Assembly (NCBI RefSeq): GCF_032444005.1
Contig: NC_091288.1
Span: 187,302,001 to 187,366,000 of the forward strand
DNA: 64,000 bases
Reading direction: 5' to 3'
Origin: Ranitomeya imitator
Taxonomy: Eukaryota
The notes under the pieces: generated by a model
Told to the model about the DNA's origin: nothing
The model's input: only the letters and a program-made list of their open reading frames with translations
The model's database searches: none
Shown here: piece by piece, positions 1 through 57,395 of the stretch
Position numbering within the stretch: the first letter of the stretch is position 1
How the letters are laid out: every line of letters starts with the position of its first letter
Made by a program: the position numbers and the translations under genes

Positions 1-582
1 TCCAAGAAGCAGCCGAAGAAATCCGCCGCCAAGAAGAGCAATAAACCCTCCGGCCCCAGCGTCTCCGAGCTGATCGTGAAAGCCGTGTCCGCCTCCAAGG
101 AGCGCAGGGGGGTGTCTCTGGCCGCCCTGAAGAAGGTTCTGTCTGCCGGAGGATACGATGTAGAGAAGAACAACAGCCGCCTGAAGCTGGCCGTCAGGTC
201 TCTGGTCACCAAGGGCGCCCTCCTCCAGGTGAAGGGCAGCGGCGCCTCCGGGTCCTTCAAGCTGAACAAGAAGCAGGAGACGAAGGATAAAGTGGCCAAG
301 AAGAAGCCAGCAGCTGCGGCCAAACCCAAGAAACCCGCTGCTGCCAAGAAAGCCGCCAAATCTCCGAAGAAGCCCAAAAAGGCTCCGACCGCGGCCAAGA
401 AGAGCCCGAAAAAGGCCAAGAAGCCCGCAGCTGCCAAGAAAGCGGCCAAGAGCCCCAAGAAGCCGAAAGCCGCTCCCAAGCCCAAGAAGGTGACGAAGAG
501 TCCGGCTAAGAAGGCGGCCAAACCCGCCAAGAGTCCGGCTAAGAAGGCTGCGAAAGCCAAGAAGCCCGCGGCTAAGAAATAA
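1..582 (+). CDS. H1: Linker histone H1 (5' end outside window), unit 1
   Basis: Frame +1 from base 1 gives the winged-helix motif [25 protein letters not shown]...[13 protein letters not shown] and a K/A/P-rich tail, stop TAA at 580-582. Colinear with the full copy at offset 25,587. Confidence 0.97.
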
Positions 583-610
583 GCTGCAGCCCCTGTTCTG
601 TTACCACAAA

Positions 611-650
611 GGCTCTTATAAGAGCCACCACCTCCTCCCCGCAGAGCTGT
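611..650 (+). terminator. H1 histone 3' stem-loop (611-626), ACCA cleavage site and HDE (641-650)
   Basis: AAA-GGCTCT-TATA-AGAGCC-ACCA followed ~10 nt later by GCAGAGCTGT, matching the vertebrate HDE consensus (AAAGAGCTGT). Confidence 0.93.
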
Positions 651-3600
651 ATGATCAGTGCCACCACCTCCTCCCCGCAGAGCTGTATGATCAGTGCCAT
701 CACCTCCTCCCCGCAGAGCTGTATGATCAGTGCCACCACCTCCTCCCCGCAGAGCTGTATGATCAGTGCCACCACCTCCTCCCCGCAGAGCTGTATGATC
801 AGAGCCATCACCTCCCCGCAGAGCTGTATGATCAGAGCCATCACCTCCCCGCAGAGCTGTATGATCAGAGCCATCGCCTTCTCCCCGCAGAGCTGTATGA
901 TCAGTGCCACCACCTCCTCGCAGAGCTGTATGATCAGTGCCACTTTCTCCCCGCAGAGCTGTATGATCAGAGCCATCACCTTCTCCTCGCAGAGCTGTAT
1001 GATCAGAGCCACCTTCTCCCCGCAGAGCTGTATGATCAGTGCCACCACCTCCTCGCAGAGCTGTATGATCAGAGCCACCTTCTCCCCGCAGAGCTGTATG
1101 ATCAGAGCCATCACCTCCCCGCAGAGCTGTATGATCAGAGCCATCACCTTCTCCCCACAGAGCTGTATGATCAGAGCCACCTTCTCCCCGCAGAGCTGTA
1201 TGATCAGTGCCACCACCTCCTCGCAGAGCTGTATGATCAGAGCCACCTTCTCCCCGCAGAGCTGTATGATCAGAGCCATCACCTTCCCGCAGAGCTGTAT
1301 GATCAGTGTCACCACCTCCTCGCAGAGCTGTATGATCAGTGTCACCACCTCCTCGTCGCAGAGCTGTATGATCAGAGCCACCTTCTCCCCGCAGAGCTGT
1401 ATGATCAGAGCCATCACTTCCTCACCGCAGAGCTGTATGATCAGAGCCATCACCTCCCCGCAGAGCTGTATGATCAGAGGTATCACCTTCTCCCCGAAGA
1501 GCTGTATGATCAGTGCCACCACCTCCTCGCAGAGCTGTATGATCAGAGCCACCTTCTCCCCGCAGAGCTGTATGATCAGAGCCATCACCTTCTCCCCGCA
1601 GAGCTGTATGATCAGAGCCACCTTCTCCCAGCAGAGCTGTATGATCAGTGCCACCACCTCCTCGCAGAGCTGTATGATCAGAGCCACCACCTCCTCCCCG
1701 CAGAGCTGTATGATCAGAGCCATCACCTCGCCGCAGAGCTGTATGATCAGAGCCATCACCTTCTCTCCGCAGAGCTGTATGATCAGAGCCACCTTCTCCC
1801 CGCAGAGCTGTATGATCAGTGCCATCACCTCCTCGCAGAGCTGTATGATCAGAGCCACCTTCTCCCAGCAGAGCTGTATGATCAGAGCCATCACCTCCTC
1901 CCCGCAGAGCTGTATGATCAGAGCCATCACCTCCTCCCCGCAGAGCTGTATGATCAGTGACACCACCTCCTCCCCGCAGAGCTGTATGATCAGAGCCATC
2001 ACCTTCCCGCAGAGCTGTATGATCAGTGTCACCACCTCCTCGCAGAGCTGTATGATCAGTGTCACCACCTCCTCGTCGCAGAGCTGTATGATCAGAGCCA
2101 CCTTCTCCCCGCAGAGCTGTATGATCAGAGCCATCACTTCCTCACCGCAGAGCTGTATGATCAGAGCCATCACCTCCCCGCAGAGCTGTATGATCAGAGG
2201 TATCACCTTCTCCCCGAAGAGCTGTATGATCAGTGCCACCACCTCCTCGCAGAGCTGTATGATCAGAGCCACCTTCTCCCCGCAGAGCTGTATGATCAGA
2301 GCCATCACCTCCTCCCCGCAGAGCTGTATGATCAGAGCCACCTTCTCCCCGCAGAGCTGTATAATCAGTGCCACCACCTCCTCGCAGAGCTGTATGATCA
2401 GAGCCACCACCTCCTCCCCGCAGAGCTGTATGATCAGAGCCATCACCTCCCCGCAGAGCTGTATGATCAGAGCCATCACTTTCTCTCCGCAGAGCTGTAT
2501 GATCAGAGCCACCTTCTCCCCGCAGAGCTGTATGATCAGTGCCATCACCTCCTCGCAGAGCTGTATGATCAGAGCCACCTTCTCCCAGCAGAGCTGTATG
2601 ATCAGAGCCATCACCTCCTCCCCGCAGAGCTGTATGATCAGAGCCATCACCTCCTCCCCGCAGAGCTGTATGATCAGTGCCACCACCTCCTCCCCGCAGA
2701 GCTGTATGATCAGTGCCATCACCTCCTCCCCGCAGAGCTGTATGATTAGTGCCACCACCTCCTCCCCGCAGAGCTGTATGATCAGTGCCACCACCTCCTC
2801 CCCGCAGAGCTGTATGATCAGAGCCATCACCTCCTCCCCGCAGAGCTGTATGATCAGAGCCATCACCTTCTCCCCGCAGAGCTGTATGATCAGAGCCACC
2901 TTCTCCCCGCAGAGCTGTATGATCAGTGCCACCACCTCCTCCTCGCAGAGCTGTATGATCAGAGCCACCACCTCCTCCCCGCAGAGCTGTATGACCAGAG
3001 CCATCACCTCCCCGCAGAGCTGTATGATCAGAGCCATCGCCTTCTCCCCGCAGAGCTGTATGATCAGTGCCACCACCTCCTCGCAGAGCTGTATGATCAG
3101 TGCCACTTTCTCCCCGCAGAGCTGTATGATCAGAGCCATCACCTTCTCCTCGCAGAGCTGTATGATCAGAGCCACCTTCTCCCCGCAGAGCTGTATGATC
3201 AGTGCCACCACCTCCTCGCAGAGCTGTATGATCAGAGCCACCTTCTCCCCGCAGAGCTGTATGATCAGAGCCATCACCTCCCCGCAGAGCTGTATGATCA
3301 GAGCCATCACCTTCTCCCCACAGAGCTGTATGATCAGAGCCACCTTCTCCCCGCAGAGCTGTATGATCAGTGCCACCACCTCCTCGCAGAGCTGTATGAT
3401 CAGAGCCACCTTCTCCCCGCAGAGCTGTATGATCAGAGCCATCACCTTCCCGCAGAGCTGTATGATCAGTGTCACCACCTCCTCGCAGAGCTGTATGATC
3501 AGTGTCACCACCTCCTCGTCGCAGAGCTGTATGATCAGAGCCACCTTCTCCCCGCAGAGCTGTATGATCAGAGCCATCACTTCCTCACCGCAGAGCTGTA

Positions 3601-6600
3601 TGATCAGAGCCATCACCTCCCCGCAGAGCTGTATGATCAGAGGTATCACCTTCTCCCCGAAGAGCTGTATGATCAGTGCCACCACCTCCTCGCAGAGCTG
3701 TATGATCAGAGCCACCTTCTCCCCGCAGAGCTGTATGATCAGAGCCATCACCTTCTCCCCGCAGAGCTGTATGATCAGAGCCACCTTCTCCCCGCAGAGC
3801 TGTATGATCAGTGCCACCACCTCCTCGCAGAGCTGTATGATCAGAGCCACCACCTCCTCCCCGCAGAGCTGTATGATCAGAGCCATCACCTCCCCGCAGA
3901 GCTGTATGATCAGAGCCATCACCTTCTCTCCGCAGAGCTGTATGATCAGAGCCACCTTCTCCCCGCAGAGCTGTATGATCAGTGCCATCACCTCCTCGCA
4001 GAGCTGTATGATCAGAGCCACCTTCTCCCAGCAGAGCTGTATGATCAGAGCCATCACCTCCTCCCCGCAGAGCTGTATGATCAGAGCCATCACCTCCTCC
4101 CCGCAGAGCTGTATGATCAGTGACACCACCTCCTCGCAGAGCTGTATGATCAGTGCCACCTTCTCCCCGCAGAGCTGTATGATCAGAGCCATCACCTTCT
4201 CCCCGCAGATCTGTATGATCAGAGCCACCTTCTCCCCGCAGAGCTGTATGATCAGAGCCACCTTCTCCCCGCAGAGCTGTATGATCAGAGCCACCACCTC
4301 CTCCACGCAGAGCTGTATGATCAGAGCCACCACCTCCTCCCCGCAGAGCTGTATGATCAGTGCCACCACCTCCTCGCAGAGCTGTATGATCAGAGCCACC
4401 TTCTCCCCGCAGAGCTGTATGATCAGAGCCATCACCTTCTCCCCGCAGAGCTGTATGATCAGAGCCACCTTCTCCCCGCAGAGCTGTATGATCAGTGCCA
4501 CCACCTCCTCGCAGAGCTGTATGATCAGAGCCACCACCTCCTCCCCGCAGAGCTGTATGATCAGAGCCATCACCTCCCCGCAGAGCTGTATGATCAGAGC
4601 CATCACCTTCTCTCCGCAGAGCTGTATGATCAGAGCCACCTTCTCCCCGCAGAGCTGTATGATCAGTGCCACCACCTCCTCGCAGAGCTGTATGATCAGT
4701 GCCACTTTCTCCCCGCAGAGCTGTATGATCAGAGCCATCACCTTCTCCTCGCAGAGCTGTATGATCAGAGCCACCTTCTCCCCGCAGAGCTGTATGATCA
4801 GTGCCACCACCTCCTCGCAGAGCTGTATGATCAGAGCCACCTTCTCCCCGCAGAGCTGTATGATCAGAGCCACCTTCTCCCCGCAGAGCTGTATGATCAG
4901 TGCCACCACCTCCTCGCCGAGCTGTATGATCAGTGCCACCTTCTCCCCGCAGAGCTGTATGATCAGAGCCATCACCTCCCCGCAGAGCTGTATGATCAGA
5001 GCCATCACCTCCCCGCAGAGCTGTATGATCAGAGCCATCACCTTCTCCCCGCAGAGCTGTATGATCAGAGCCACCTTCTCCCCGCAGAGCTGTATGATCA
5101 GTGCCACCACCTCCTCGCCGAGCTGTATGATCAGTGCCACCTTCTCCCCGCAGAGCTGTATGATCAGAGCCATCACCTTCCCGCAGAGCTGTATGATCAG
5201 TGCCACCACCTCCTCGCACAGCTGTATGATCAGTGCCACCTTCTCCCCGCAGAGCTGTATGATCAGAGCCACCACCTCCTCGCAGAGCTGTATGATCAGA
5301 GCCACCTTCTCCCCGCAGAGCTGTATGATCAGAGCCATCACCTTCTCCCGGCAGAGCTGTATGATCAGAGCCACCTTCTCCCCGCAGAGCTGTATGATCA
5401 GTGCCACCACCTCCTCGCAGAGCTGTATGATCAGAGCCACCACCTCCTCCCCGCAGAGCTGTATGATCAGAGCCATCACCTCCCCGCAGAGCTGTATGAT
5501 CAGAGCCATCACCTTCTCTCCGCAGAGCTGTATGATCAGAGCCACCTTCTCCCCGCAGAGCTGTATGATCAGTGCCACCACCTCCTCGCAGAGCTGTATG
5601 ATCAGTGCCACTTTCTCCCCGCAGAGCTGTATGATCAGTGCCACCACCTCCTCGCAGAGCTGTATGATCAGAGCCACCTTCTCCCCGCAGAGCTGTATGG
5701 TCAGAGCCATCACCTTCCCGCAGAGCTGTATGATCAGTGTCACCACCTCCTCGCAGAGCTGTATGATCAGTGTCACCACCTCCTCGTCGCAGAGCTGTAT
5801 GATCAGAGCCACCTTCTCCCCGCAGAGCTGTATGATCAGAGCCATCACTTCCTCACCGCAGAGCTGTATGATCAGAGCCATCACCTCCCCGCAGAGCTGT
5901 ATGATCAGAGGTATCACCTTCTCCACGAAGAGCTGTATGATCAGTGCCACCACCTCCTCGCAGAGCTGTATGATCAGAGCCACCTTCTCCCCGCAGAGCT
6001 GTATGATCAGAGCCATCACCTTCTCCCCGCAGAGCTGTATGATCAGAGCCACCTTCTCCCCGCAGAGCTGTATGATCAGTGCCACCACCTCCTCGCAGAG
6101 CTGTATGATCAGAGCCACCACCTCCTCCCCGCAGAGCTGTATGATCAGAGCCATCACCTCCCCGCAGAGCTGTATGATCAGAGCCATCACCTTCTCTCCG
6201 CAGAGCTGTATGATCAGAGCCACCTTCTCCCCGCAGAGCTGTATGATCAGTGCCATCACCTCCTCGCAGAGCTGTATGATCAGAGCCACCTTCTCCCAGC
6301 AGAGCTGTATGATCAGAGCCATCACCTCCTCCCCGCAGAGCTGTATGATCAGAGCCATCACCTCCTCCCCGCAGAGCTGTATGATCAGTGACACCACCTC
6401 CTCGCAGAGCTGTATGATCAGTGCCACCTTCTCCCCGCAGAGCTGTATGATCAGAGCCATCACCTTCTCCCCGCAAATCTGTATGATCAGATCCACCTTC
6501 TCCCCGCAGAGCTGTATGATCAGAGCCACCTTCTCCCCGCAGAGCTGTATGATCAGAGCCACCACCTCCTCCACGCAGAGCTGTATGATCAGAGCCACCA

Positions 6601-9600
6601 CCTCCTCCCCGCAGAGCTGTATGATCAGAGCCATCACCTTCTCCCCACAGAGCTGTATGATCAGAGCCACCTTCTCCCCGCAGAGCTGTATGATCAGTGC
6701 CACCAACTCCTCGCAGAGCTGTATGATCAGTGCCACTTTCTCCCCGCAGAGCTGTATGATCAGAGCCATCACCTTCTCCCCGCAGATCTGTATGATCAGA
6801 GCCACCTTCTCCCCGCAGAGCTGTATGATCAGAGCCACCTTCTCCCCGCAGAGCTGTATGATCAGAGCCACCACCTCCTCCACGCAGAGCTGTATGATCA
6901 GAGCCACCTTCTCCCCGCAGAGCTGTATGATCAGAGGCATCACCTTCTCCCCGCAGAGCTGTATGATCAGAGCCACCTTCTCCCCGCAGAGCTGTATGAT
7001 CAGTGCCACCACCTCCTCGCAGAGCTGTATGATCAGAGCCACCACCTCCTCCCCGCAGAGCTGTATGATCAGAGCCATCACCTCCCCGCAGAGCTGTATG
7101 ACCAGAGCCATCACCTTCTCTCCGCAGAGCTGTATGATCAGAGCCACCTTCTCCCCGCAGAGCTGTATGATCAGTGCCACCACCTCCTCGCAGAGCTGTA
7201 TGATCAGTGCCACTTTCTCCCCGCAGAGCTGTATGATCAGAGCCATCACCTTCTCCTCGCAGAGCTGTATGATCAGAGCCACCTTCTCCCCGCAGAGCTG
7301 TATGATCAGTGCCACCACCTCCTCGCAGAGCTGTATGATCAGAGCCACCTTCTCCCCGCAGAGCTGTATGATCAGAGCCACCTTCTCCCCGCAGAGCTGT
7401 ATGATCAGTGCCACCACCTCCTCGCCGAGCTGTATGATCAGGGCCACCTTCTCCCCGCAGAGCTGTATGATCAGAGCCATCACCTCCCCGCAGAGCTGTA
7501 TGATCAGAGCCATCACCTCCCCGCAGAGCTGTATGATCAGAGCCATCACCTTCTCCCCGCAGAGCTGTATGATCAGAGCCACCTTCTCCCCGCAGAGCTG
7601 TATGATCAGTGCCACCACCTCCTCGCCGAGCTGTATGATCAGTGCCACCTTCTCCCCGCAGAGCTGTATGATCAGAGCCATCACCTTCCCGCAGAGCTGT
7701 ATGATCAGTGCCACCACCTCCTCGCACAGCTGTATGATCAGTGCCACCTTCTCCCCGCAGAGCTGTATGATCAGAGCCACCACCTCCTCGCAGAGCTGTA
7801 TGATCAGAGCCACCTTCTCCCCGCAGAGCTGTATGATCAGAGCCATCACCTTCTCCCGGCAGAGCTGTATGATCAGAGCCACCTTCTCCCCGCAGAGCTG
7901 TATGATCAGTGCCACCACCTCCTCGCAGAGCTGTATGATCAGAGCCACCACCTCCTCCCCGCAGAGCTGTATGATCAGAGCCATCACCTCCCCGCAGAGC
8001 TGTATGATCAGAGCCATCACCTTCTCTCCGCAGAGCTGTATGATCAGAGCCACCTTCTCCCCGCAGAGCAGTATGATCAGTGCCACCACCTCCTCGCAGA
8101 GCTGTATGATCAGTGCCACTTTCTCCCCGCAGAGCTGTATGATCAGAGCCATCACCTTCTCCTCGCAGAGCTGTATGATCAGTGCCACCACCTTCTCGCA
8201 GAGCTGTATGATCAGAGCCACCTTCTCCCCGCAGAGCTGTATGATCAGAGCCATCACCTCCCCGCAGAGCTGTATCATCAGAGCCATCACCTTCTCCCCA
8301 CAGAGCTGTATGTTCAGAGCCACCTTCTCCCCGCAGAGCTGCTTGATCAGTGCCACCACCTCCTCGCAGAGCTGTATGATCAGAGCCACCTTCTCCCCGC
8401 AGAGCTGTATGATCAGAGCCATCACCTTCCCGCAGAGCTGTATGATCAGTGTCACCACCTCCTCGCAGAGCTGTATGATCAGTGTCACCACCTCCTCGTC
8501 GCAGAGCTGTATGATCAGAGCCACCTTCTCCCCGCAGAGCTGTATGATCAGAGCCATCACTTCCTCACCGCAGAGCTGTATGATCAGAGCCATCACCTCC
8601 CCGCAGAGCTGTATGATCAGAGGTATCACCTTCTCCCCGAAGAGCTGTATGATCAGTGCCACCACCTCCTCGCAGAGCTGTATGATCAGAGGCACCTTCT
8701 CCCCGCAGAGCTGTATGATCAGAGCCATCACCTTCTCCCCGCAGAGCTGTATGATCAGAGCCACCTTCTCCCCGCAGAGCTGTATGATCAGTGCCACCAC
8801 CTCCTCGCAGAGCTGTATGATCAGAGCCACCACCTCCTCCCCGCAGAGCTGTATGATCAGAGCCATCACCTCCCCGCAGAGCTGTATGATCAGAGCCATC
8901 ACCTTCTCTCCGCAGAGCTGTATGATCAGAGCCACCTTCTCCCCGCAGAGCTGTATGATCAGTGCCACCACCTCCTCGCAGAGCTGTATGATCAGAGCCA
9001 CCTTCTCCCCGCAGAGCTGTATGATCAGAGCCATCACCTTCCCGCAGAGCTGTATGATCAGTGCCACCACCTTCTCGCAGAGCTGTATGATCAGTGCCAC
9101 CTTCTCCCCGCAGAGCTGTATGATCAGAGCCACCACCTCCTCGCAGAGCTGTATGATCAGAGCCACCTTCTCCCCGCAGAGCTGTATGATCAGAGCCATC
9201 ACCTTCTCCCCGCAGAGCTGTATGATCAGAGCCACCTTCTCCCCGCAGAGCTGTATGATCAGTGCCACCACCTCCTCGCCGAGCTGTATGATCAGTGCCA
9301 CCACCTCCTCGCAGAGCTGTATGATCAGTGCCACCTTCTCCCCGCAGAGCTGTATGATCAGAGCCATCACCTCCCCGCAGAGCTGTATGATCAGAGCCAT
9401 CACCTCCCCGCAGAGCTGTATGATCAGAGCCATCACCTTCTCCCCGCAGAGCTGTATGATCAGAGCCACCTTCTCCCCGCAGAGCTGTATGATCAGTGCC
9501 ACCACCTCCTCGCCGAGCTGTATGATCAGTGCCACCTTCTCCCCGCAGAGCTGTATGATCAGAGCCATCACCTTCCCGCAGAGCTGTATGATCAGTGCCA

Positions 9601-11005
9601 CCACCTCCTCGCAGAGCTGTATGATCAGTGCCACCTTCTCCCCGCAGAGCTGTATGATCAGAGCCACCACCTCCTCGCAGAGCTGTATGATCAGAGCCAC
9701 CTTCTCCCCGCAGAGCTGTATGATCAGAGCCATCACCTTCTCCCCGCAGAGCTGTATGATCAGAGCCAACTTCTCCCCGCAGAGCTGTATGATCAGTGCC
9801 ACCACCTCCTCGCAGAGCTGTATGATCAGAGCCACCACCTCCTCCCCGCAGAGCTGTATGATCAGAGCCATCACCTCCCCGCAGAGCTGTATGATCAGAG
9901 CCATCACCTTCTCTCCGCAGAGCTGTATGATCAGAGCCACCACCTCCTCGCAGAGCTGTATGATCAGTGCCACTTTCTCCCCGCAGAGCTGTATGATCAG
10001 AGCCATCACCTTCTCCTCGCAGAGCTGTATGATCAGAGCCAACTTCTCCCCGCAGAGCTGTATGATCAGTGCCACCACCTCCTCGCAGAGCTGTATGATC
10101 AGAGCCACCTTCTCCCCGCAGAGCTGTATGATCAGAGCCATCACCTCCCCGCAGAGCTGTATGATCAGAGCCATCACCTTCTCCCCACAGAGCTGTATGA
10201 TCAGAGCCACCTTCTCCCCGCAGAGCTGTATGATCAGTGCCACCACCTCCTCGCAGAGCTGTATGATCAGAGCCACCTTCTCCCCGCAGAGCTGTATGAT
10301 CAGAGCCATCACCTTCCCGCAGAGCTGTATGATCAGTGCCACCACCTCCTCGCAGAGCTGTATGATCAGAGCCATCACCTTCTCTCCGCAGAGCTGTATG
10401 ATCAGAGCCACCTTCTCCCCGCAGAGCTGTATGATCAGTGCCACCACCTCCTCGCAGAGCTGTATGATCAGTGCCACCTTCTCCCCGCAGAGCTGTATGA
10501 TCAGTGCCACCACCTCCTCCCCGCAGAGCTGTATGATCAGAGCCAACACCTCCTCCCCGCAGAGCTGTATGATCAGAGCCACCTCTTCCCCGCAGAGCTG
10601 TATGATCAGTGCCACCACCTCCTCCCCGCAGAGCTGTATGATTAGTGCCACCACCTCCTCCCCGCAGAGCTGTATGATCAGAGCCACCACCTCCTCCTCG
10701 CAGATCTGTATTAGTGCCACCACCTCCTCCCCGCAGAGCTGTATGATCAGAGCCATCACCTCCTCCCCGCAGAGCTGTATGATTAGTGCCACCACCTCCT
10801 CCCCGCAGAGCTGTATGATCAGTGCCATCACCTCCTCCCCGCAGAGCTTTATTATCAGAGCCACCACCTCCTCCCCACAGAGCTGTATGATCAGAGCCAC
10901 CACCTCCTCCCCGCAGAGCTGTATGATCAGAGCCATCACCTCCTCCCCGCAGAGCTGTATGATCAGTGCCATCACCTCCTCCCCGCAGAGCTGTATGATC
11001 AGAGC
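620..11005. repeat. H1-downstream minisatellite array 1 (~300 monomers of 33/36 bp)
   Basis: Tandem AG(A/T)GCCA[C-rich 9-12 nt variable]CGCAGAGCTGTATGATC. It begins in the 3' arm of the H1 stem-loop and ends at ...TATGATCAGAGC|AGGG. Internal 720-bp period (lines 1261 and 1981 are identical). Confidence 0.98.
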
Positions 11006-11226
11006 AGGGAATAATAACAATATCCAAACAATAATCAATAAGCGCCTCAGAAAAGTGGGGTCGAGACAACACTGGTATAGCCCCCCTATTAATATTACCC
11101 AGATGTCTCGGGTTATAAGGACAACTCCAATAAACATACAAAACCAAAGAAAGGAGTGAACCAGTCCCACAAAACATAATACAAATCAATATCCACAAAA
11201 ATACATAAAACACATAAATCCAGTAA

Positions 11227-11913
<687 letters not shown>

Positions 11914-12880: not shown

Positions 12881-13414
<534 letters not shown>

Positions 13415-14434: not shown

Positions 14435-14990
<556 letters not shown>

Positions 14991-15020: not shown

Positions 15021-15036
15021 GGCTCTTCTAAGAGCC
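15021..15036 (+). terminator. H2B histone 3' stem-loop
   Basis: CCCAAA-GGCTCT-TCTA-AGAGCC-ACCCA. Confidence 0.95.
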
Positions 15037-15731
15037 ACCCACAGCCTCGCTATAAGAGCCACCCACAGCCTCGCTATAAGAGCCACCCACAGCCTCACTA
15101 TAAGAGCCCCCCACAGCCTCACTATAAGAGCCACCCACAGCCTCACTATAAGAGCCCCCCACAGCCTCACTATAAGAGCCACCCACAGCCTCACTATAAG
15201 AGCCCCCCACAGCCTCACTATAAGAGCCACCCACAGCCTCGCTATAAGAGCCACCCACAGCCTCGCTATAAGAGCCACCCACAGCCACACTATAAGAGCC
15301 CCCCACAGCCTCGCTATAAGAGCCCCCCACAGCCTCACTATAAGAGCCCCCCACAGCCACACTATAAGAGCCCCCCACAGCCTCGCTATAAGAGCCCCCC
15401 ACAGCCACACTATAAGAGCCCCCCACAGCCTCGCTATAAGAGCCCCCCACAGCCTCGCTATAAGAGCCACCCACAGCCTCACTATAAGAGCCCCCCACAG
15501 CCTCGCTATAAGAGCCCCCCACAGCCTCACTATAAGAGCCACCCACAGCCTCACTATAAGAGCCCCCCACAGCCTCACTATAAGAGCCCCCCACAGCCTC
15601 ACTATAAGAGCCCCCCACAGCCTCGCTATAAGAGCCCCCCACAGCCTCACTATAAGAGCCCCCCACAGCCTCACTATAAGAGCCCCCCACAGCCTCGCTA
15701 TAAGAGCCCCCCACAGCCTCACTATAAGAGC
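15029..15731. repeat. H2B-downstream 24-bp minisatellite, 29 copies
   Basis: (TAAGAGCC[A/C]CCCACAGCC[T/A]C[G/A]CTA)n from 15029. The terminal TAAGAGCTG is at 15725, i.e. 696 = 29 x 24 nt later. Confidence 0.97.
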
Positions 15732-18908: not shown

Positions 18909-21900
18909 TATTATTATTTATTATATTTGTTCCATGGCGCTTTACATGTGAGGAGGGGTATACATAATGAAAACAAGTACAATAATCTTAAACAATACAA
19001 GTCATAACTGGTACAGGAGGAATGAGGACCCTGCCCACGAAGGCTCACAATCTACAAGGGATGGGTGAGAATACAGTAGGTGAGGGTAGAGATGGTCATG
19101 CAGCGGTTTGGTCGATCGGTGGTAACTGCAGGTTGTAGGCTTGTCTGAAGAGGTGTGTCTTCAGGTTCTTTTTGAAGGTTTCAATGGTAGGCGAGAGTCT
19201 GATGTGTTGTGGTAGAGGGTTCCAGAGTAGGGGTGATACGCGAGAGAAATCTTGTATACGATTGTGGGAAGAGGAGATAAGAGGGGAGTAGAGTAGGAGA
19301 TCTTGTGAGGATCGGAGGTTGCGAGTAGGTAAGTACCGGGAGACGAGGTCACAGATGTATGGAGGAGACAGGCTGTGGATGGCTTTGTACGTTAGGGTTT
19401 TATAGTGGAGTCTCTGGGCAATGGGGGGCCAGTGAAGGGATTGACAGAGGGGAGAGGCCGGGGAATAGGGGGGGACAGGTGGATTAGTCGGGCAGCAGAG
19501 TTTAAAATAGATTGGAGGGGTGCGAGAGTGTTAGAGGGGAGGCCACAGAGCAGGAGGTTGCAGTAGTCAAGGCGAGAGATGAGGGCATGGACTAGGGTTT
19601 TTGCAGATTCATGGTTGAGGAATGAACGGATTCGGGAAATATTTTTGAGTTGAAGTCGGCAGGAAGTGGAAAGGGCTTGGATATGTGGTTTGAAGGAGAG
19701 ATCAGCGTCAAGGATTACCCCGAGGCAGCGAGCTTGTGGGACTGGGGAGAGTGGGCAGCCATTTACTGTAATGGATAGGTTCGTTGGGGGGGGGTCGCTT
19801 GAGATGGGGGAAAGATGATGAATTCTGTTTTGTCCATGTTAAGTTTCAGAAATCTAGCGGAGAAGGATGAAATAGTGGACAGACATTGAGGGATTCTGGT
19901 TAGAAGGGAGGTGATATCTGGTCCAGAGATGTAGATCTGTGTGTCGTCAGCATACAGGTGATACTGAAAGCCATGAGATTCTATGAGCTGTCCCAGGCCA
20001 AAGGTGTAAATGGAGAAGAGCAAGGGCCCAAGGACTGAACCTTGTGGGACTCCGACAGATAGGGGGCGAGGTGAGGAGGTGGTGTGTGAGTGGGAGACGC
20101 TGAATGTCCGGTCTGTTAGGTATGATGAGATCCAGGATAGGGCCAAGTCTGCGATGCCAAGGGAGGAGAGGGTTTGTAATAATAGGGAATGGTCCACTGT
20201 GTCAAAGGCAGCCGACAGGTCGAGGAGGACAGAGTAGTGTCGCTTGCTCTTGGCGGTTAAGAGGTCATTGGTGACTTTAGTTAGGGCAGTTTCGGTGGAA
20301 TGGTGTGACCGGAAGCCAGATTGTAGGCGGTCAAAGAGGGAGCAAGAAGAGAGATGGGAGGACAGTTCAAGGTAGACGTGTTGTTCCAGTAGTTTTGAGG
20401 CAAAGGGGAGAAGTGATATAGGGCGATAGCTAGATACAGAGGATGGGTCAAGAGAGGGCTTTTTGAGGATAGGTGTGATTGAGGCATGTTTAAAGCTTGA
20501 GGGGAAAACACCAGTTGTTAGTGATAGGTTGAAGAGATGGGTTAGGGTTGGGATGAAGATTGTGGTGAGGTGTGGGATGGGAGTGGGTCAAGTGCACAGG
20601 TGGTGAGATGCGATCTTGAGAGTAGAGTGGAGAGTTGATCTTCTGTAATGGTGGAGAAGTTGGTTTTGGAGGTGGAGGGCTGGGAAATCGGGAGGAAGAG
20701 CTCTGGGGGTTTTTGACCAAAACTGTCTCTAATACTATCAATCTTCTGCTTGAAAAATGAGGCAAAGTCTTCAGCAGAGATAAGTGGGGAGGGAGGAGGT
20801 GCTGGGGGACGGAGGAGAGAATTGAAGGTGTTGAATAACTGTTTAGGGTTGTGAGAGAGAGAGGAGATGAGAAGTAGGTTTGTTTAGCTGTGGCGAGTGT
20901 GGTCTTGAAAGTAGTGAGGGACTGTTTGAATGCGATGAAGTGCTCGTTAGAGTGGGATCTTTTCCATCTGCGCTCAGCAGCCCTGGAAGCTCGCCTCAGT
21001 TCTTTGGTCAGGCTGGTGTGCCAGGGCTGTCTATTGATTTTGCGAGCTTTGGTATGTGTAAGTGGGGCAGCAGATTCCAAAGCTAGAGCTATTGTGGTGT
21101 TATATAGAGCAGCAGCGTCATCCGCATTGTGTATGGAACTTATGCCTGTGAGGGGGAGGAGGGATTCAGAGAATGAGTGTAGGTCAAGATGTTTAATATT
21201 TCTGCGAGGGTGTGAAAGTTTGTGGGGTGGGGATTGTAGACATGGAGTGGAGAGAGATGAGAATGTGAGAAGGTTGTGGTCAGAGAGTGGAAGAGGTGAG
21301 TTAGAGAGGTTAGATAGAGAGCAGAGGCGGGTGAAGATGAGGTCCAATGTGTGACCGTCTTTGTGAGTGGCTGCAGAAGACCATTGAGTGAGGCCGAAGG
21401 AGGAAGTGAGAGTTAGAAGTTTAGTGGCAGCTGAGAGGGAAGTGTCAATGGGGATGTTGAAGTCACCCATGATGATAGTGGGGATGTCCGCAGAAAGGAA
21501 ATGAAGTAGCCAGGTGGTGAAGTGGTCAAAGAAGATGGTGGCTGGCCCTGGGGGGCGGTAAATGACAGCCAGTTGGAGGTTGGTGGGGGAATAGATGCGC
21601 ACAGAGTGCACCTCAAAGGAAGGGAGGGTAACAGAGGGTGGCAGTGGGATTGGGGTGAAGGAACAGTTATCTGACAGGAGAAAACCAACTCCTCCGCCAT
21701 GTTTGCTGCTGGGGCGGGGTGTGTGGGAAAGGTGGAAGCCACCATAAGAGAGTGCAGCAGGGGAGACTGTGTCAGAAGGGGTGAGCAAGGTTTCGGTGAT
21801 GGCGAGGAAGGAAAGTTTGGTAGTAACAAAGAGATCATGGATGTAGGAGAGCTTGTTGCAGACAGAGTGGGCGTTCCACAGAGCTCCTGTTAGTGGGACT

Positions 21901-23284: not shown

Positions 23285-24010
23285 TGTAAAAATTTGGGGG
23301 GCATTTTGAGGGCAACCCAAACGTTGTGCCCCACCAAAAAATGCCCCGGTTGACCCAAAACATTCTGAAAAAAATTACCACACACTCTTAAAGTGTTCCT
23401 CTACACACCCTGCGAATTTGTGGTCGACAGACCCAAGCCGGGCTGAGCAGTGACCCTGCGCACCATAGACTTCAATGGGCAGGGTCACTTTGGGGAGTCT
23501 CTGCTCAGCCCAATTTGTGGCTATCAACCACACATTTTCAGGTTGTGTAGCGTACCCGTAGCTCTAGTAGACCAGTGCTGTAAAAATTTGGGGGACATTT
23601 TGAGATCACCCCAAAAATATGCCCACCCCCAAACTTCTGAACAAATTAACCTACACTCTTGAATTGTTCCTCTACACACCCTGAAAATGTGGGGTTGATA
23701 GGCACAAATCAGGCTGAGCAGTGACACTGTGCGCGATAGGCTTCAATGGGCAGGGCAGCTTTGGGGGGTAACTGCTCAGCCCAGATTGGGGCTATCTACC
23801 TGAAATTTTCATAGTGTGTAGAGGAACAATTCATTAGTTGGGCTATTTTTTCAGAATTGTTAGGTTAATAGGAAGGAGGCTTTTTTTTTTTTTTTTTTTT
23901 GGGGGGGGGGGCATAACTTTTGGGGTGCCCTCAAAGTGCCACCCTCAATTTTTTACACTATTGGTTCGCTAGGGGTACTCTACACACCCTGAAAATTTGG
24001 GGTTGATAGC
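23285..24010. repeat. Palindromic/direct composite repeat (~293-bp period, internal fold-backs)
   Basis: GTAAAAATTTGGGGG..CATTTTGAG at ~23286 and ~23580. Internal arms TGTTCCTCTACACAC...GCTGAGCAGT / ACTGCTCAGC...GTGTGTAGAGGAACA. Inverted copy of the start at ~23918-23958. Confidence 0.6.
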
Positions 24011-25399
24011 CCCCACATCGTACAATCAGCTCCCTGTGCGATAGACATTGGAGTAAAGGTCCCTGTGATGGAGACAAGAGCCGGGAACAGGAGGAACGAG
24101 CTCCCGCAGCAGATTTATCTCCCCGGTACACAGTGAGGTGCAGATCGGGAGGACGGCGGCGATGATCCTAATCTGAAAGAATGTTTCGGCACTCAAAATT
24201 TATATGCTTGAAAAAAAGAAAATTTTATTGGAGATATATGTTTCAGAAAATCGTTGTAACGTTTCGGTCATAACATTGACCTTCGTCAAACTGGAGTACA
24301 TAAAACAGAAAGAGATAATATCTTAATATAATACAATCAGTGTCCATCAAAAATGGAAATACAGTATTGAACCAAAATTCATATCAATAAAAATACAAAA
24401 GAATATTTTTGGAAAAAAGAGAACAGTTCTAGTCTGGTCTAGATAAGACGTTAAATCGGTGATGATTAGCTGCAGAACAGTTTCACATAGATTTAATATA
24501 AATGTTATATGGCATAATATATGTTCTGATAATAGGTTTACACAGGACAATTGAGATCACATTAGTCATGATTTTTTTTTATATAACAGATGTCTCCAAT
24601 TCTGAGAGGAAATATTGAAAAAAACAACCAAGTAAAAACAGAAAATAAAAAATAAAAAAAGGAAAGAAAAAAATAGATGGACTTAGGTCTTACCAAGTAT
24701 ATTAAACGTGCATAATCATGTGTGCGGTCCTATTTATCTCTGTGAGTGGGAAAGGACCATCTATGTCCTAATCCTAAAGACAAAGAAACGGAATACCTAA
24801 TTGTACTAAACTGGTATATCAAGATAGGTGATATTCACAATCAGAAACATCGGACAGGTGATTGCAATCAGCCCCCGATGTGGATCATCTACTAATGTGC
24901 AACACGTGTCCCCCCCAATACTCTGCACTTATGGGGTACAGTGATATCACAGGTCAGGGAGGGGGCAGTCAGCGGAGGCCGTCGCCTGTGTTACCCTTCT
25001 GGGTTCTCAGCAGCTCCAGCTCGTCCCCACATCGTACAATCAGCTTCCTGTGCGATAAACATTGGAGTAAAGATCCCTGTGATGGTGACAAGAGCCGGGG
25101 ACAGGAGGAACGAGCTCCCGCAGCAGATTTATCTCCCCGGGTACACAGTGAGGTGCAGATCGGGAGGACGGCGGCGATGATCCCGGGATATTCTCTCCGC
25201 TCTTTCCCGGCATCTCTGCTAGTGACGGCTACAAATGGCCGGTGGAGATGTTGGAGAAGGGGAGGCGACGGAGGAAGCGCGCTCTGCTGTCCGGTGTTAG
25301 CCGGTAAAGGGCTTTTATCCCGGGCAGGGAAGCACAAGGGGAGAGCGGAGCTTAACCCGGACTCAGCTGGGAGGAAGCGGGGCCTGTGTCCAGTGTCAG

Positions 25400-25464
25400 C
25401 CAATAGGAGCTCAGGACGGTGCAGCTCAGCAGCCAATCAGTGCGCAGTAAGCCTGTACATATAA
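25400..25464 (+). promoter_or_regulatory. H1 promoter
   Basis: CCAAT 25400, CCAATCAGTGCGC 25433 (H1-type CCAAT context), CATATAA 25458. Confidence 0.7.
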
Positions 25465-25539
25465 CAGGCGCCTCCAGCTCCGGCCTCAGTATTTTCCTTC
25501 CTATCAAGAAGTATTTTCGTTTTGCTTCTGCAGCACATG

Positions 25540-26169
25540 ATGGCAGAGACCGCGCCAGCTGCCGCTCCCGCAGAACCGGCCGCCAAATCCAAGAAGCAGC
25601 CGAAGAAATCCGCCGCCAAGAAGAGCAATAAATCCTCCGGCCCCAGCGTCTCCGAGCTGATCGTGAAAGCCGTGTCCGCCTCCAAGGAGCGCAGCGGGGT
25701 GTCTCTGGCCGCCCTGAAGAAGGTTCTGTCTGCCGGAGGATACGATGTAGAGAAGAACAACAGCCGCCTGAAGCTGGCCGTCAGGTCTCTGGTCACCAAG
25801 GGCGCCCTCCTCCAGGTGAAGGGCAGCGGCGCCTCCGGGTCCTTCAAGCTGAACAAGAAGCAGGAGACGAAGGACAAAGTGGCCAAGAAGAAGCCAGCAG
25901 CTGCGGCCAAACCCAAGAAACCCGCTGCTGCCAAGAAAGCCGCCAAATCTCCGAAGAAGCCCAAAAAGGCTCCGACCGCGGCCAAGAAGAGCCCGAAAAA
26001 GGCCAAGAAGCCCGCAGCTGCTAAGAAAGCGGCCAAGAGCCCCAAGAAGCCGAAAGCCGCTCCCAAGCCCAAGAAGGTGACGAAGAGTCCGGCTAAGAAG
26101 GCGGCCAAACCCTCCAAGAGTCCGGCTAAGAAGGCTGCGAAAGCCAAGAAGCCCGCGGCTAAGAAATAA
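25540..26169 (+). CDS. H1: Linker histone H1, unit 2 (209 aa; alternative ATG at 25537)
   Basis: [19 protein letters not shown]...[12 protein letters not shown]...KKPAAKK. The second ATG has the better Kozak context (A-3, G+4). Confidence 0.98.
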
Positions 26170-26197
26170 GCTGCAGCCCCTGTTCTGTTACCACAAA

Positions 26198-26237
26198 GGC
26201 TCTTATAAGAGCCACCACCTCCTCCCCGCAGAGCTGT
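26198..26237 (+). terminator. H1 stem-loop (26198-26213) and HDE, unit 2
   Basis: Identical to 611-650. Confidence 0.93.
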
Positions 26238-29200
26238 ATGATCAGTGCCATCACCTCCTCCCCGCAGAGCTGTATGATCAGTGCCACCACCTCCTCCCCG
26301 CAGAGCTGTATGATCAGAGCCACCACCTCCTCGCAGAGCTGTATGATCAGAGCCACCTTCTCCCCGCAGAGCTGTATGATCAGAGCCATCACCTTCTCCC
26401 CGCAGAGCTGTATGATCAGAGCCACCTTCTCCCCGCAGAGCTGTATGATCAGTGCCACCACCTCCTCGCCGAGCTGTATGATCAGTGCCACCTTCTCCCC
26501 GCAGAGCTGTATGATCAGAGCCACCACCTCCTCGCAGAGCTGTATGATCAGAGCCACCTTCTCCCCGCAGAGCTGTATGATCAGAGCCATCACCTTCTCC
26601 CCGCAGAGCTGTATGATCAGAGCCACCTTCTCCCCGCAGAGCTGTATGATCAGTGCCACCACCTCCTCGCCGAGCTGTATGATCAGTGCCACCACCTCCT
26701 CGCAGAGCTGTATGATCAGTGCCACCTTCTCTCCGCAGAGCTGTATGATCAGAGCCATCACCTCCTCGCCGAGCTGTATGATCAGTGCCACCTTCTCCCC
26801 GCAGAGCTGTATGATCAGAGCCATCACCTTCCAGCAGAGCTGTATGATCAGTGCCACCACCTCCTCGCAGAGCTGTATGATCAGTGCCACCTTCTCCCCG
26901 CAGAGCTGTATGATCAGAGCCACCACCTCCTCGCAGAGCTGTATGATCAGTGCCACCACCTCCTCGCCGAGCTGTATGATCAGTGCCACCTTCTCCCCGC
27001 AGAGCTGTATGATCAGAGCCATCACGTTCCCGCAGAGCTGTATGATCAGTGCCACCACCTCCTCGCAGAGCTGTATGATCAGTGCCACCTTCTCCCCGCA
27101 GAGCTGTATGATCAGAGCCACCACCTCCTAGCAGAGCTGTATGATCAGAGCCACCTTCTCCCCGCAGAGCTGTATGATCAGAGCCATCACCTTCTCCCCG
27201 CAGAGCTGTATGATCAGAGACACCTTCTCCCCGCAGAGCTGTATGATCAGTGCCACCACCTCCTCGCAGAGCTGTATGATCAGAGCCACCACCTCCTCCC
27301 CGCAGAGCTGTATGATCAGAGCCATCACCTCCCCGCAGAGCTGTATGATCAGAGCCATCACCTTCTCTCCGCAGAGCTGTATGATCAGAGACACCTTCTC
27401 CCCGCAGAGCTGTATGATCAGTGCCACCACCTCCTCGCAGAGCTGTATGATCAGTGCCACTTTCTCCCCGCAGAGCTGTATGATCAGAGCCCTCACCTTC
27501 TCCTCGCAGAGCTGTATGATCAGAGCCACCTTCTCCCCGCAGAGCTGTATGATCAGTGCCACCACCTCCTCGCAGAGCTGTATGATCAGAGCCACCTTCT
27601 CCCCGCAGAGCTGTATGATCAGAGCCATCACCTCCCCGCAGAGCTGTATGATCAGAGCCATCACCTTCTCCCCACAGAGCTGTATGATCAGAGCCACCTT
27701 CTCCCCGCAGAGCTGTATGATCAGTGCCACCACCTCCTCGTAGAGCTGTATGATCAGAGCCACCTTCTCCCCGCAGAGCTGTATGATCAGAGCCATCACC
27801 TTCCCGCAGAGCTGTATGATCAGTGCCACCACCTCCTCGCAGAGCTGTATGATCAGAGCCATCACCTCCTCCCCGCAGAGCTGTATGATCAGAGCCATCA
27901 CCTCCTCCCCGCAGAGCTGTATGATCAGTGACACCACCTCCTCGCAGAGCTGTATGATCAGTGCCACCTTTTCCCCGCAGAGCTGTATGATCAGAGCCAT
28001 CACCTTCTCCCCGCAGAGCTGTATGATCAGAGCCACCTTCTCCCCGCAGAGCTGTATGATCAGAGCCACCTTCTCCCCGCAGAGCTGTATGATCAGAGCC
28101 ACCACCTCCTCCCCGCAGAGCTGTATGATCAGAGCCACCACCTCCTCCCCGTAGAGCTGTATGATCAGTGCCACCACCTCCTCGCAGAGCTGTATGATCA
28201 GTGCCACCTTCTCCCCGCAGAGCTGTATGATCAGAGCCATCACCTCCCCGCAGAGCTGTATGATCAGTGCCACCACCTCCTCGCAGAGCTGTATGATCAG
28301 TGCCACCTTCTCCCCGCAGAGCTGTATGATCAGAGCCACCTTCTCCCCGCAGAGCTGTATGATCAGTGTCACCACCTCCTCGCAGAGCTGTATGATCAGA
28401 GCCACCTTCTCCCCGCAGAGCTGTATGATCAGAGCCATCACCTCCTCCCCGCAGAGCTGTATGATCAGAGCCATCACCTCCTCCCCGCAGAGCTGTATGA
28501 TCAGTGCCACCACCTCCTCGCAGAGCTGTATGATCAGTGACACCTTCTCCCCGCAGAGCTGTATGATCAGAGCCACCACCTCCTCCCCGCAGAGCTGTAT
28601 GATCAGAGCCACCACCTCCTCCCCGCAGAGCTGTATGATCAGAGCCACCACCTCCTCCCCGTAGAGCTGTATGATCAGTGCCACCACCTCCTCGCAGAGC
28701 TGTATGATCAGAGCCACCTTCTCCCCGCAGAGCTGTATGATCAGAGCCATCACCTCCCCGCAGAGCTGTATGATCAGTGCCACCACCTCCTCGCAGAGCT
28801 GTATGATCAGTGCCACCTTCTCCCCGCAGAGCTGTATGATCAGAGCCACCTTCTCCCCGCAGAGCTGTATGATCAGTGTCACCACCTCCTCGCAGAGCTG
28901 TATGATCAGAGCCACCTTCTCCCCGCAGAGCTGTATGATCAGAGCCATCACCTCCTCCCCGCAGAGCTGTATGATCAGAGCCATCACCTCCTCCCCGCAG
29001 AGCTGTATGATCAGTGCCACCACCTCCTCGCAGAGCTGTATGATCAGTGACACCTTCTCCCCGCAGAGCTGTATGATCAGAGCCATCACCTCCTCCCCGC
29101 AGAGCTGTATGATCAGAGCCATCACCTTCTCCCCGCAGAGCTGTATGATCAGAGCCACCTTCTCCCCGCATAGCTGTATGATCAGAGCCACCACCTCCTC

Positions 29201-41200: not shown

Positions 41201-43441
41201 GCAGAGCTGTATGATCAGAGCCACCTTCTCCCCGCAGAGCTGTATGATCAGAGCCATCACCTCCCCGCAGAGCTGTATGATCAGAGCCATCACCTTCTCC
41301 CCACAGAGCTGTATGATCAGAGCCACCTTCTCCCCGCAGAGCTGTATGATCAGTGCCACCACCTCCTCGCAGAGCTGTATGATCAGAGCCACCTTCTCCC
41401 CGCAGAGCTGTATGATCAGAGCCATCACCTTCCCGCAGAGCTGTATGATCAGTGCCACCACCTCCTCGCAGAGCTGTATGATCAGAGCCATCACCTCCTC
41501 CCCGCAGAGCTGTATGATCAGAGCCATCACCTCCTCCTCGCAGAGCTGTATGATCAGTGCCACCTTCTCCCCGCAGAGCTGTATGATCAGAGCCATCACC
41601 TTCTCCCCGCAGAGCTGTATGATCAGAGCCACCTTCTCCCCGCAGAGCTGTATGATCCGAGCCACCTTCTCCCCGCAGAGCTGTATGATCAGAGCCACCA
41701 CCTCCTCCACGCAGAGCTGTATGATCAGAGCCACCACCTCCTCCCCGCAGAGCTGTATGATCAGTGCCACCACCTCCTCCCCGCAGAGCTGTATGATCAG
41801 TGTCACCACCTCCTCCCCGCAGAGCTGTATTATCAGTGCCACCACCTCCTCCTCGCAGAGCTGTATGATCAGAGCCACCAACACCTCCCTGCAGAGCTGT
41901 ATGATCAGTGTCACCACCTCCTCGTCGCAGAGCTGTATGATCAGAGCCACCTTCTCCCCGCAGAGCTGTATGATCAGAGCCATCACTTCCTCACCGCAGA
42001 GCTGTATGATCAGAGCCATCACCTCCCCGCAGAGCTGTATGATCAGAGGTATCACCTTCTCCCCGTAGAGCTGTATGATCAGAGCCATCACCTTCTCCCC
42101 GCAGAGCTGTATGATCAGAGCCATCACCTTCTCCCCGAAGAGCTGTATGATCCGTTCCACCACCTTCTCCCCGCAGAGCTGTATGATCAGTGTCACCACC
42201 TCCTCGTCGCAGAGCTGTATGATCAGTGCCACCTTCTCCCTGCAGAGCTGTATGATCAGAGCCACCTTCTCCCCGCAGAGCTGTATGATCAGTGTCACCA
42301 CCTCCTCGCAGAGCTGTATGATCAGAGCCACCTTCTCCCCGCAGAGCTGTATGATCAGAGACATCACTTTCTCCCCGCAGAACTGTATGATCAGAGCCAC
42401 CACCTCCTCCCCGCAGAGGTGTATGATCAGAGCCACCACCTTCTCCCCGCAGAGCTGTATGATCAGAGGTATCACCTTCTCCCCGCAGAGCCGTATGATC
42501 AGTGCCACCTTCTCCCCGCAGAGCTGTATGATCAGAGCCACCACCTCCTCCCCGCAGAGCTGTATGATCAGAGCCATCACCTCCTCCCAGCAGAGCTGTA
42601 TGATCAGAGCCACCTCCTCCCCGCAGAGCTGTATGATCAGAGCCACCTTCTCCCCGCAGAGCTGTATGATCAGAGACATCACTTTCTCCCCGCAGAACTG
42701 TATGATCAGAGCCACCACCTCCTCCCCGCAGAGGTGTATGATCAGAGCCACCACCTTCTCCCCGCAGAGCTGTATGATCAGAGGTATCACCTTCTCCCCG
42801 CAGAGCCGTATGATCAGTGCCACCTTCTCCCCGCAGAGCTGTATGATCAGAGCCACCACCTCCTCCCCGCAGAGCTGTATCATCAGTGCCATCACTTCCT
42901 CCCCGCAGAGCTGTATGATCAGAGCCACCACCTCCTCCCCGCAGAGCTGTATGATCAGTGCCATCACCTCCTCCCCGCAGAGCTGTATGATTAGTGCCAC
43001 CACCTCCTCCCCGCAGAGCTGTATGATCAGAGCCATCACCTCCTCCCCGCAGAGCTGTATGATCAGAGCCATCACCTTCTCCCCGCAGAGCTGTATGATC
43101 AGAGCCACCTTCTCCCCGCAGAGCTGTATGATCAGTGCCACCACCTCCTCGCCGAGCTGTATGATCAGTGCCACCTTCTCCCCGCAGAGCTGTATGATCA
43201 GAGCCATCACCTTCCCGCAGAGCTGTATGATCAGTGCCACCACCTCCTCGCAGAGCTGTATGATCAGTGCCACCTTCTCCCCGCAGAGCTGTATGATCAG
43301 AGCCACCACCTCCTCGCAGAGCTGTATGATCAGAGCCACCACCTCCTCCCCGCAGAGCTGTATCATCAGAGCCATCACTTCCTCCCCGCAGAGCTGTATG
43401 ATCAGAGCCATCACTTCTTCCTCGCAGAGCTGTATGATCAG
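26207..43441. repeat. H1-downstream minisatellite array 2 (~500 monomers) with higher-order repeats
   Basis: Same monomer family as array 1, with nested periods of ~510, 2,850/2,922 and 7,320 bp. Ends ...TATGATCAG|TTCTCGG. Confidence 0.98.

Positions 43442-43818: not shown

Positions 43819-44505
<687 letters not shown>

Positions 44506-47105: not shown

Positions 47106-47582
<477 letters not shown>

Positions 47583-57074: not shown

Positions 57075-57395
<321 letters not shown>

Follow-up and report, generated by a model that had tools for sequence, protein, structure and literature searches.

The textbook account of histone 3'-end formation rests on one pair of signals at a precise position, a stem-loop and a histone downstream element (HDE). 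In the newt Notophthalmus, whole histone clusters are separated by a satellite whose unit is a few hundred bp long and bears no relation to the processing signal. Transcription that starts at histone promoters and runs on into satellite DNA has been described in newt and Xenopus oocytes (PMC11602149; PMC2114352), and satellites of this type sit at the loci of spheres, or histone locus bodies (PMC12046345). This is the closest known case to the locus analysed here, a 64,000-nt stretch of the Ranitomeya imitator genome (NC_091288.1, positions 187,302,001 to 187,366,000, forward strand; hereafter the window), in which each H1 gene is followed by hundreds of tandem copies of its own 3' processing signal. 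As in the newt, an amphibian histone locus carries long tandem repeats beside its genes, and transcription passes the histone 3' end into the repeat, as shown here for the proximal edge. The frog array differs from the newt satellite in that its 33- or 36-bp monomer is the H1 processing signal, abuts the stem-loop and lies between H1 and H3 in every unit. No description of such an array was found in the literature searched, with the monomer sequence included among the queries, and the H1-array satellite seems to be undescribed.

A preliminary description of the window had claimed about 300 tandem copies 3' of H1, beginning within the H1 stem-loop, and both claims were confirmed. The stem-loop at 611-626 (GGCTCT TATA AGAGCC) and the ACCA cleavage-site sequence at 627-630, both on the plus strand, were recognized by sequence, RF00032 and folding. 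The RF00032 score was 29.9 bits (E = 5e-6 over 606-652), which is under the gathering score of 34, and the hairpin had a folding energy of -9.4 kcal/mol. Monomer 1 (621-656, plus strand) is the native H1 signal, comprising the 3' arm (621-626), ACCA, a C-rich spacer, the core AGAGCTGTA (643-651) and TGATC. The six bases of the 3' arm are thus also the first six bases of the array, and the monomer corresponds to the H1 3' processing signal without its 5' arm and loop, as had been proposed. Array 1 consists of 303 monomers of 33 or 36 bp (621-11000, plus strand), followed by a partial AGAGC at 11001-11005. The second H1 gene has its own stem-loop and ACCA (26198-26217, plus strand) and is followed by array 2, with 505 monomers (26208-43439, plus strand). 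Tandem Repeats Finder (TRF) reported period-33 arrays at 628-11005 (305 copies) and 26215-43441 (506 copies), with 85-87% matches. The arrays measure 10.4 kb and 17.2 kb, a 1.7-fold difference in length.

Monomers of both arrays were delimited by cutting at a conserved 15-nt anchor block, CAGAGCTGTATGATC, which is exact in 723 of the 808 monomers. Monomer length is strictly 33 bp (527 monomers) or 36 bp (280) across the two arrays, and a single 69-bp interval between anchors represents one missed anchor. The core AGAGCTGTA occurs 768 times (290 in array 1 and 478 in array 2), always on the H1 sense (plus) strand, and is absent from the plus strand of the window outside the two arrays. In 798 of 808 monomers a CA dinucleotide occupies positions -14/-13 relative to the core, which matches the spacing of the native H1 site. 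This native distance is kept automatically, because the spacer is built in ACCACC triplet phase and changes length by 3-bp indels. The order of parts previously proposed for the monomer, namely arm, cleavage-like sequence, C-rich spacer and HDE, was observed throughout, but the exact letters of the first two parts are less uniform than had been stated. Among the 808 monomers, 490 have AGAGCC as the 3' arm and 249 have AGTGCC, a form carried by half of the 33-mers, and the arm is followed by ACC(A), ATCA or also ACCT.

The variants among monomers record how the arrays have changed. There are 92 distinct monomers across the arrays, and 36-bp types identical to the native H1 flank lie at both array edges. 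The 33-mers are 36-mers that have lost 3 bp, through several different losses in the ACC-ACC-TCC-TCC tract. Because the losses are of 3 bp within a triplet tract, all periods are multiples of three and reading frames stay open. This bears on the possibility that the array is a coding repeat. Open reading frames (ORFs) of 3502 codons (651-11159, plus strand) and 3532 codons (572-11170, minus strand) span array 1, and every monomer holds an in-frame ATG. However, the frames are open on both strands simultaneously, the triplet substructure of the spacer explains the 3-bp indels, and the corresponding frames of array 2 contain 17 and 7 stops. A coding repeat, whose probability we judged to be negligible, was ruled out by these 7-17 interruptions in array 2.

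Array 2 also contains a near-identical tandem block (27940-42410, plus strand), in which about 7 kb (approximately 27940-35090) is repeated at a shift of 7320 bp. The shifted copies differ by one mismatch over windows 28214 to 34713, and the autocorrelation of monomer types in array 2 reaches 0.71 at lag 215. This block duplication accounts for almost all of the excess length of array 2 over array 1. Two origins are possible for it, a very recent unequal exchange and a duplication made during assembly. Arrays 1 and 2 also have in common runs of identical monomers up to 18 long.

An assembly duplication of this kind would fit an assembler that had made the array, or its length, as an artefact. 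This is highly improbable. Words of window 560-1760, which covers the H1 3' untranslated region and the array start, were found in runs of at least seven studies under four organism labels; short array contigs were present in all four of the runs examined; and arrays of different size lie behind both H1 genes in the window. We regard it as settled that the array is real and that it originated as a satellite seeded by the H1 processing signal.

In the reading that we favour, the array is a satellite that arose as a by-product, with weak U7 sites carried incidentally by its read-through RNA, and we give this account about an even chance of being correct. A neutral slippage product, one of several options offered in the preliminary description, is the leading reading. 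The 36-bp tail of the H1 3' processing signal, spanning the stem-loop 3' arm, the cleavage CA, the C-rich spacer, the HDE and five further bases, would have been duplicated repeatedly to give a young tandem satellite with fast turnover. Growth would have proceeded by replication slippage and then by unequal exchange of blocks, with length variants of only 3 bp arising in the ACC/TCC triplet tract and near-identical block duplications reaching 7.3 kb. The array would be tolerated because the gene-proximal copy keeps the H1 stem-loop, cleavage site and HDE in their native form. Support for this reading comes from the strict 33/36-bp periods, the native-type edges, the 7.3-kb duplication and the unit-specific distal junctions, and a slippage origin is further supported by a parallel 24-bp array behind H2B and by an expressed H1 flank that lacks the array. 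The entry of RNA into the array, the U7 duplex energies of the monomers and the low predicted folding of array RNA, all described below, are also in its favour.

The distal junctions were compared between the two copies. The spacer that leads from array 1 toward the H3 promoter (11001-11440, plus strand) begins with a unit-specific stretch and continues as flank common to both units, with AATAAA at 11129-11134. In the second copy the unit-specific distal segment lies at 43440-43595 (plus strand). The unit-specific stretch before the common flank therefore measures 29 nt in the first copy and 156 nt in the second, whereas the proximal junction is fixed. The AATAAA lies in an A-rich stretch in both copies (11129-11134 and 43695-43700), 129 and 256 nt past the array ends and upstream of the H3 promoter. 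Its sequence and position make it a candidate site for the polyadenylation of H1 read-through RNA.

The array behind H2B starts in the stem-loop arm AAGAGCC and leads to the HDE AAGAGCTG. It consists of 29 exact 24-bp units in the first copy (15029-15731, plus strand) and 40 units in the second (47621-48587, plus strand), and the unit length equals the interval between the arm AAGAGCC and AAGAGCTG. The HDE at the far end of the array is AAGAGCTGCGG, or AAGAGCTGTGG in the second copy. This array is clearly, by its sequence, a microhomology-slippage product, and it demonstrates a tendency of the cluster's histone 3' ends to expand in tandem. Like the H1 array, it starts in the 3' arm of a stem-loop, has a strict period and a copy number that depends on the unit, and lies on the sense strand. 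The two differ in their boundaries. The H2B unit runs from arm to HDE, is bounded by AAGAGC microhomology and leaves a 6-7-nt arm/HDE hybrid in each unit, whereas the H1 unit passes the HDE, retains the full 9-nt core and has ends that match the flanks only by AG or AGAGC. An origin by arm-to-HDE microhomology, exact for H2B, was accordingly not confirmed for the H1 array, whose unit overruns the HDE. As a further feature of this array, the strongest H2B HDE is displaced by 0.7-1 kb, and each 24-bp unit offers an AAGAGCC look-alike at the normal distance.

Transcription was assessed with contig sets from four runs (the RNA-labelled X1 and X2, and X5 and X11) placed on positions 23600-26600, comprising the H1 upstream flank, H1 and 12 monomers. 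X1 gave a single 735-nt contig over 25526-26254, which starts 14 nt upstream of the ATG, passes the cleavage-site A (26217) by 37 nt and reaches into monomer 2. Coverage of the 1.9 kb upstream of H1 (23600-25518) was zero in all four runs, at equal genomic copy number. Because this equal-copy flank is silent, the X1 bridge is RNA-derived, and DNA contamination as the source of the H1-to-array contig was ruled out. The body of the H1 mRNA therefore continues as RNA past the cleavage site into the proximal edge of the array, in agreement with the transcription into the array that had been envisaged earlier.

The X2 contig departs from this arrangement after 26236 and continues as 43514-43543, which lies within the unit-2-specific distal segment and 74 nt beyond array 2. 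It joins this segment directly to the H1 HDE and represents an H1 3' flank without the array. Splicing as the cause of the 26236/43514 joint was ruled out, as there is no GT-AG placement and the joint carries CTG microhomology, which indicates an array-less copy at the DNA level. Array-less H1 copies exist and are expressed.

Contigs of X5 and X11 on this region were confined to the array, and DNA contamination is possible for both. X11 is a cDNA-type library, as its contig ends carry the template-switch oligo and Illumina adapters; its summed array depth was approximately 11,000, with zero for H1. This depth is collapsed over thousands of genomic monomers, and per-copy depth may not exceed background, so we do not take it to prove that array RNA is abundant. 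Overall, RNA-labelled runs contain 20-28% of the sampled words of window 560-1760. For the exit region (43445-43945), the fraction of words present was 0.18-0.22 in the RNA-labelled runs of one study and 0.32 in a run of the cDNA-type study. In two X11 contigs, with loose ends at 26401 and 26478, the template-switch oligo adjoins array sequence in both orientations. These ends, one contig each, hint that both array strands may give rise to RNA 5' ends; the one on the minus strand coincides with a run of CCCC and could be an artefact of strand invasion.

Complementarity to U7 was computed with a stand-in, the 5' region common to human and mouse U7 (printed in PMC7026596), which may differ from this frog's U7; no U7 match was found within the 64-kb window. 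All pairing values given here refer to this stand-in. The H1 site and the standard monomer form nine uninterrupted Watson-Crick pairs, with a duplex energy of -14.0 kcal/mol. The nine-base core claimed earlier as a perfect HDE was thus upheld as far as pairing with the conserved mammalian U7 5' region is concerned. Best duplexes of the HDEs at the normal position were weaker for H3 (-6.8 kcal/mol), H4 (-11.5 kcal/mol) and H2A (-11.6 kcal/mol), as was that of the first-unit HDE of H2B (-11.9 kcal/mol). The additional claim that the H1 element is stronger than the normally placed HDE of any other gene in the cluster consequently holds with this stand-in. The displaced H2B HDE at the far end of the 24-bp array is stronger, at -16.5 kcal/mol. 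Monomer duplexes were at or below -14.0 kcal/mol in 753 of 808 cases and at or below -13.2 kcal/mol in 786 of 808, and shuffled 36-mers attained -14 kcal/mol in 0.34% of trials.

The HDEs of the other four genes of the window have (A)AGAGC(T/C)G in common, in some cases with one base changed (GAGAGGCTG in H4 and ATGAGCCG in H3), which would fit a frog U7 that retains CAGCUCUU. A survey of U7 genes limited universal conservation in the histone-binding region to UCUUU (PMC5054213), and the outer part of the pairing is for this reason an assumption. On the opposite strand, antisense RNA of the arrays (621-11000 and 26208-43439, minus strand) would contain UACAGCUCU hundreds of times over, a sequence identical in its nine bases to the part of mammalian U7 that binds the HDE. 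Such a transcript, if made, could mask the HDEs of histone pre-mRNAs.

The preliminary description had also proposed that each junction between monomers mimics a degenerate stem-loop. The count of four pairs out of six was right for AGAGCC monomers, and three of six pairs form in AGTGCC monomers. However, a scan of 60 monomers (2 kb) with RF00032 gave no junction match at E <= 10, the real H1 stem-loop alone being scored, and the junction hairpin had an energy of only -2.5 kcal/mol, compared to -9.4 kcal/mol for the real one. A pseudo stem-loop at the junctions was therefore ruled out, and monomers are without an SLBP-binding site. In published assays, SLBP-independent processing needed a strong U7 duplex of approximately 15-16 pairs, and a substrate with nine uninterrupted pairs left was cleaved at less than 5% in mouse extract (PMC7026596). 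Individual monomers would, by this analysis, be poor stand-alone cleavage substrates. Array RNA was predicted to fold less than its own shuffles (z = +2.39), so the U7 sites in it would be accessible.

We compared rare (<3%) and common (>=3%) variant alleles between the HDE block and the rest of the monomer. The 15-nt block CAGAGCTGTATGATC showed 23 rare and 0 common variant alleles. The first 10 nt and middle tract together showed 18 rare and 7 common alleles in 33-mers, and 17 rare and 11 common in 36-mers. The contrast between the block and the rest was significant by Fisher's exact test (p = 0.01 for 33-mers and 0.0005 for 36-mers); with the slippage-prone tract excluded, common variants occupied 3 of 9 arm sites and 0 of 15 block sites (p ~0.04). 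Mutations enter the HDE block as often as elsewhere, and none has spread. Block amplification alone should not separate variants in this way, because variants of the block and of the spacer hitch-hike in the same 33 bp. As a caveat to U7 as the source of constraint, five bases of the block lie outside mammal-type U7 pairing, and the conserved part includes TGATC and a leading C, for which no pairing with a mammal-type U7 is expected.

The same pattern could be read as the mark of a DNA-level element, in which the invariant 15-17-bp box, with its TGATCA palindrome, would bind protein, set a boundary or act in replication, as a site repeated between H1 and H3. Conservation does span the whole box, beyond the nine U7-complementary bases, and the polypyrimidine tract is strongly asymmetric (GC skew about -0.27), of the kind that forms unusual DNA structures. 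We consider such an element very unlikely: no known motif was identified in the box, which is simply the native H1 HDE region, and the statistics become modest once the slippage-prone tract is removed, as given above.

The variant pattern, the spacing and the position of the array also bear on its possible role as a selected fail-safe. If the first cut were missed, U7 would cut downstream monomers after the CA 13 nt upstream of the core, and an exonuclease would then chase the polymerase, sparing the H3 promoter from read-through. The array occupies the position directly between H1 and the H3 promoter and shares their strand, RNA enters it, CA is at the native distance in nearly all monomers, and the core is conserved, with rare variants only in the HDE block. 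Furthermore, a strong duplex lets U7 small nuclear ribonucleoprotein (snRNP) cleave without SLBP and degrade the downstream product 5'-3' (PMC7026596). Nevertheless, the monomers lack the stem-loop and their 9-bp duplex is far under the 15-16 bp of SLBP independence; the CA spacing follows automatically from triplet phase and 3-bp indels; the conserved block extends to the TGATC that mammal-type U7 leaves unpaired; an H1 copy without the array is expressed; and RNA-labelled runs contain some of the exit region. A selected fail-safe array is therefore unlikely in our estimate.

A different role would be played by the array RNA as a scaffold or sponge, in which nascent transcripts either concentrate U7 snRNP at the histone locus, as an architectural RNA, or titrate U7. 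Each transcript would offer hundreds of accessible U7-complementary sites. In the oocytes of amphibians, spheres contain U7 snRNP and sit at histone loci (PMC12046345), histone-promoter read-through into satellite DNA is known from newt and Xenopus oocytes (PMC11602149), and array words are plentiful in the X11 library, from which H1 itself is absent. Binding and localization of U7 are, however, predictions from the sequence, and the X11 depth is subject to the collapse over thousands of monomers and to the possible DNA carry-over described above. A scaffold or sponge is, in our view, rather improbable. Taken together, a selected U7-dependent terminator and/or a U7/histone-locus-body scaffold is possible, if doubtful.

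Returning to the by-product satellite, four observations weigh against it. That the variants in the HDE block are all rare resembles the effect of constraint, which would speak for a selected role. An array is present behind both of the window's H1 genes. Words of window 560-1760 occur in runs with four different organism labels, and the array may therefore predate a single species. Finally, read depth within the array is inseparable from copy-number inflation. Under the by-product reading, read-through RNA would display hundreds of accessible 9-nt U7 sites, each with a CA 13 nt upstream and without a hairpin for SLBP; having a core and a CA but no such hairpin, each would be a weak, SLBP-independent U7 site. 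Jointly, these sites could hold U7 snRNP on the nascent RNA and give low-efficiency backup cleavage and termination before H3. We take this display of U7 sites to be probably an incidental consequence of how the array arose, and not yet a selected function.

The arrays belong to a window that contains two tandem histone-cluster units, with all genes on the plus strand in the order H1, H3, H4, H2B, H2A, followed by a retroelement fragment on the opposite strand. Unit 1 begins with the 3' part of the H1 coding sequence (1-582, stop codon at 580-582), assigned from its ORF. H3 (11503-11913), H4 (13103-13414), H2B (14610-14990, partly masked) and H2A (to 18692) were assigned by ORF and Pfam. Unit 2 repeats this gene set, with H1 first; its complete H1 gene (25540-26169) is supported by its ORF, by a Pfam Linker_histone match (2e-22; copy 25540-26166) and by contigs of X1 and X2. 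Genuine stem-loops are present 3' of every gene. After unit 2, a lone H4 with a stem-loop (57084-57441) stands without an accompanying H1 or array. The H2B coding sequence is mostly N, by deliberate masking, in both units (14711-14985 and 47303-47577). Fragments of non-LTR (long terminal repeat) retrotransposon ORFs lie between H2A and the next H1 (19763-21838, minus strand) and at 52732-54714 (minus strand), so that each unit has endonuclease-like and reverse-transcriptase-like fragments with a YADD motif. Past approximately 58 kb, other repeats replace the cluster, namely 128-bp and 123-bp tandem arrays (60185-61922), and a 538-codon ORF lies on the minus strand beyond the cluster (62382-63998).

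With 300-500 HDE copies downstream of every H1 gene, a natural locus of this kind would offer a test of the way in which U7 snRNP locates substrates. It would also show whether U7 can be active in vivo in the absence of SLBP, by what means polymerase terminates past histone genes and what anchors histone locus bodies at their loci in the oocytes of amphibians. If the array were a selected device, it would be the first satellite in which an RNA-processing signal is the monomer and is used in bulk; if neutral, it would still illustrate cleanly how a satellite can be seeded by a regulatory RNA signal. The H2B array is a second independent case in the same cluster and points to a built-in instability of histone 3' ends.

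Several known systems resemble parts of this arrangement. Compared to the canonical histone 3' signal, defined by the RF00032 stem-loop and HDE and recognized by SLBP and U7 snRNP, monomer 1 is a real signal, and every monomer keeps a remnant of the 3' arm, a CA at the native distance and a U7-complementary core. Monomers 2 onward differ in having no 5' arm and loop, and so no SLBP site, and in being present in hundreds of copies instead of one. Architectural or sponge RNAs likewise repeat a short factor-binding motif, here a predicted one, within one nascent transcript. Examples are Gomafu, whose UACUAAC repeats bind SF1, and satellite III RNA (cited in PMC7151628), together with LL2R tandem-repeat transcripts on lampbrush chromosomes (bioRxiv 10.64898/2026.03.19.712899). 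Architectural RNAs bind factors and form nuclear bodies, roles that are hypothetical for the frog array. Adenylated read-through histone transcripts have been reported in Xenopus embryos (Masi & Johnson 2003, as cited in PMC11602149). Fail-safe polyadenylation in Drosophila and mammals similarly provides a backup option for 3'-end formation downstream of the normal site, and the frog AATAAA stands 129-256 nt past the arrays. Fail-safe polyadenylation uses poly(A) sites, whereas backup cleavage in the frog array would use sites of the U7 type.

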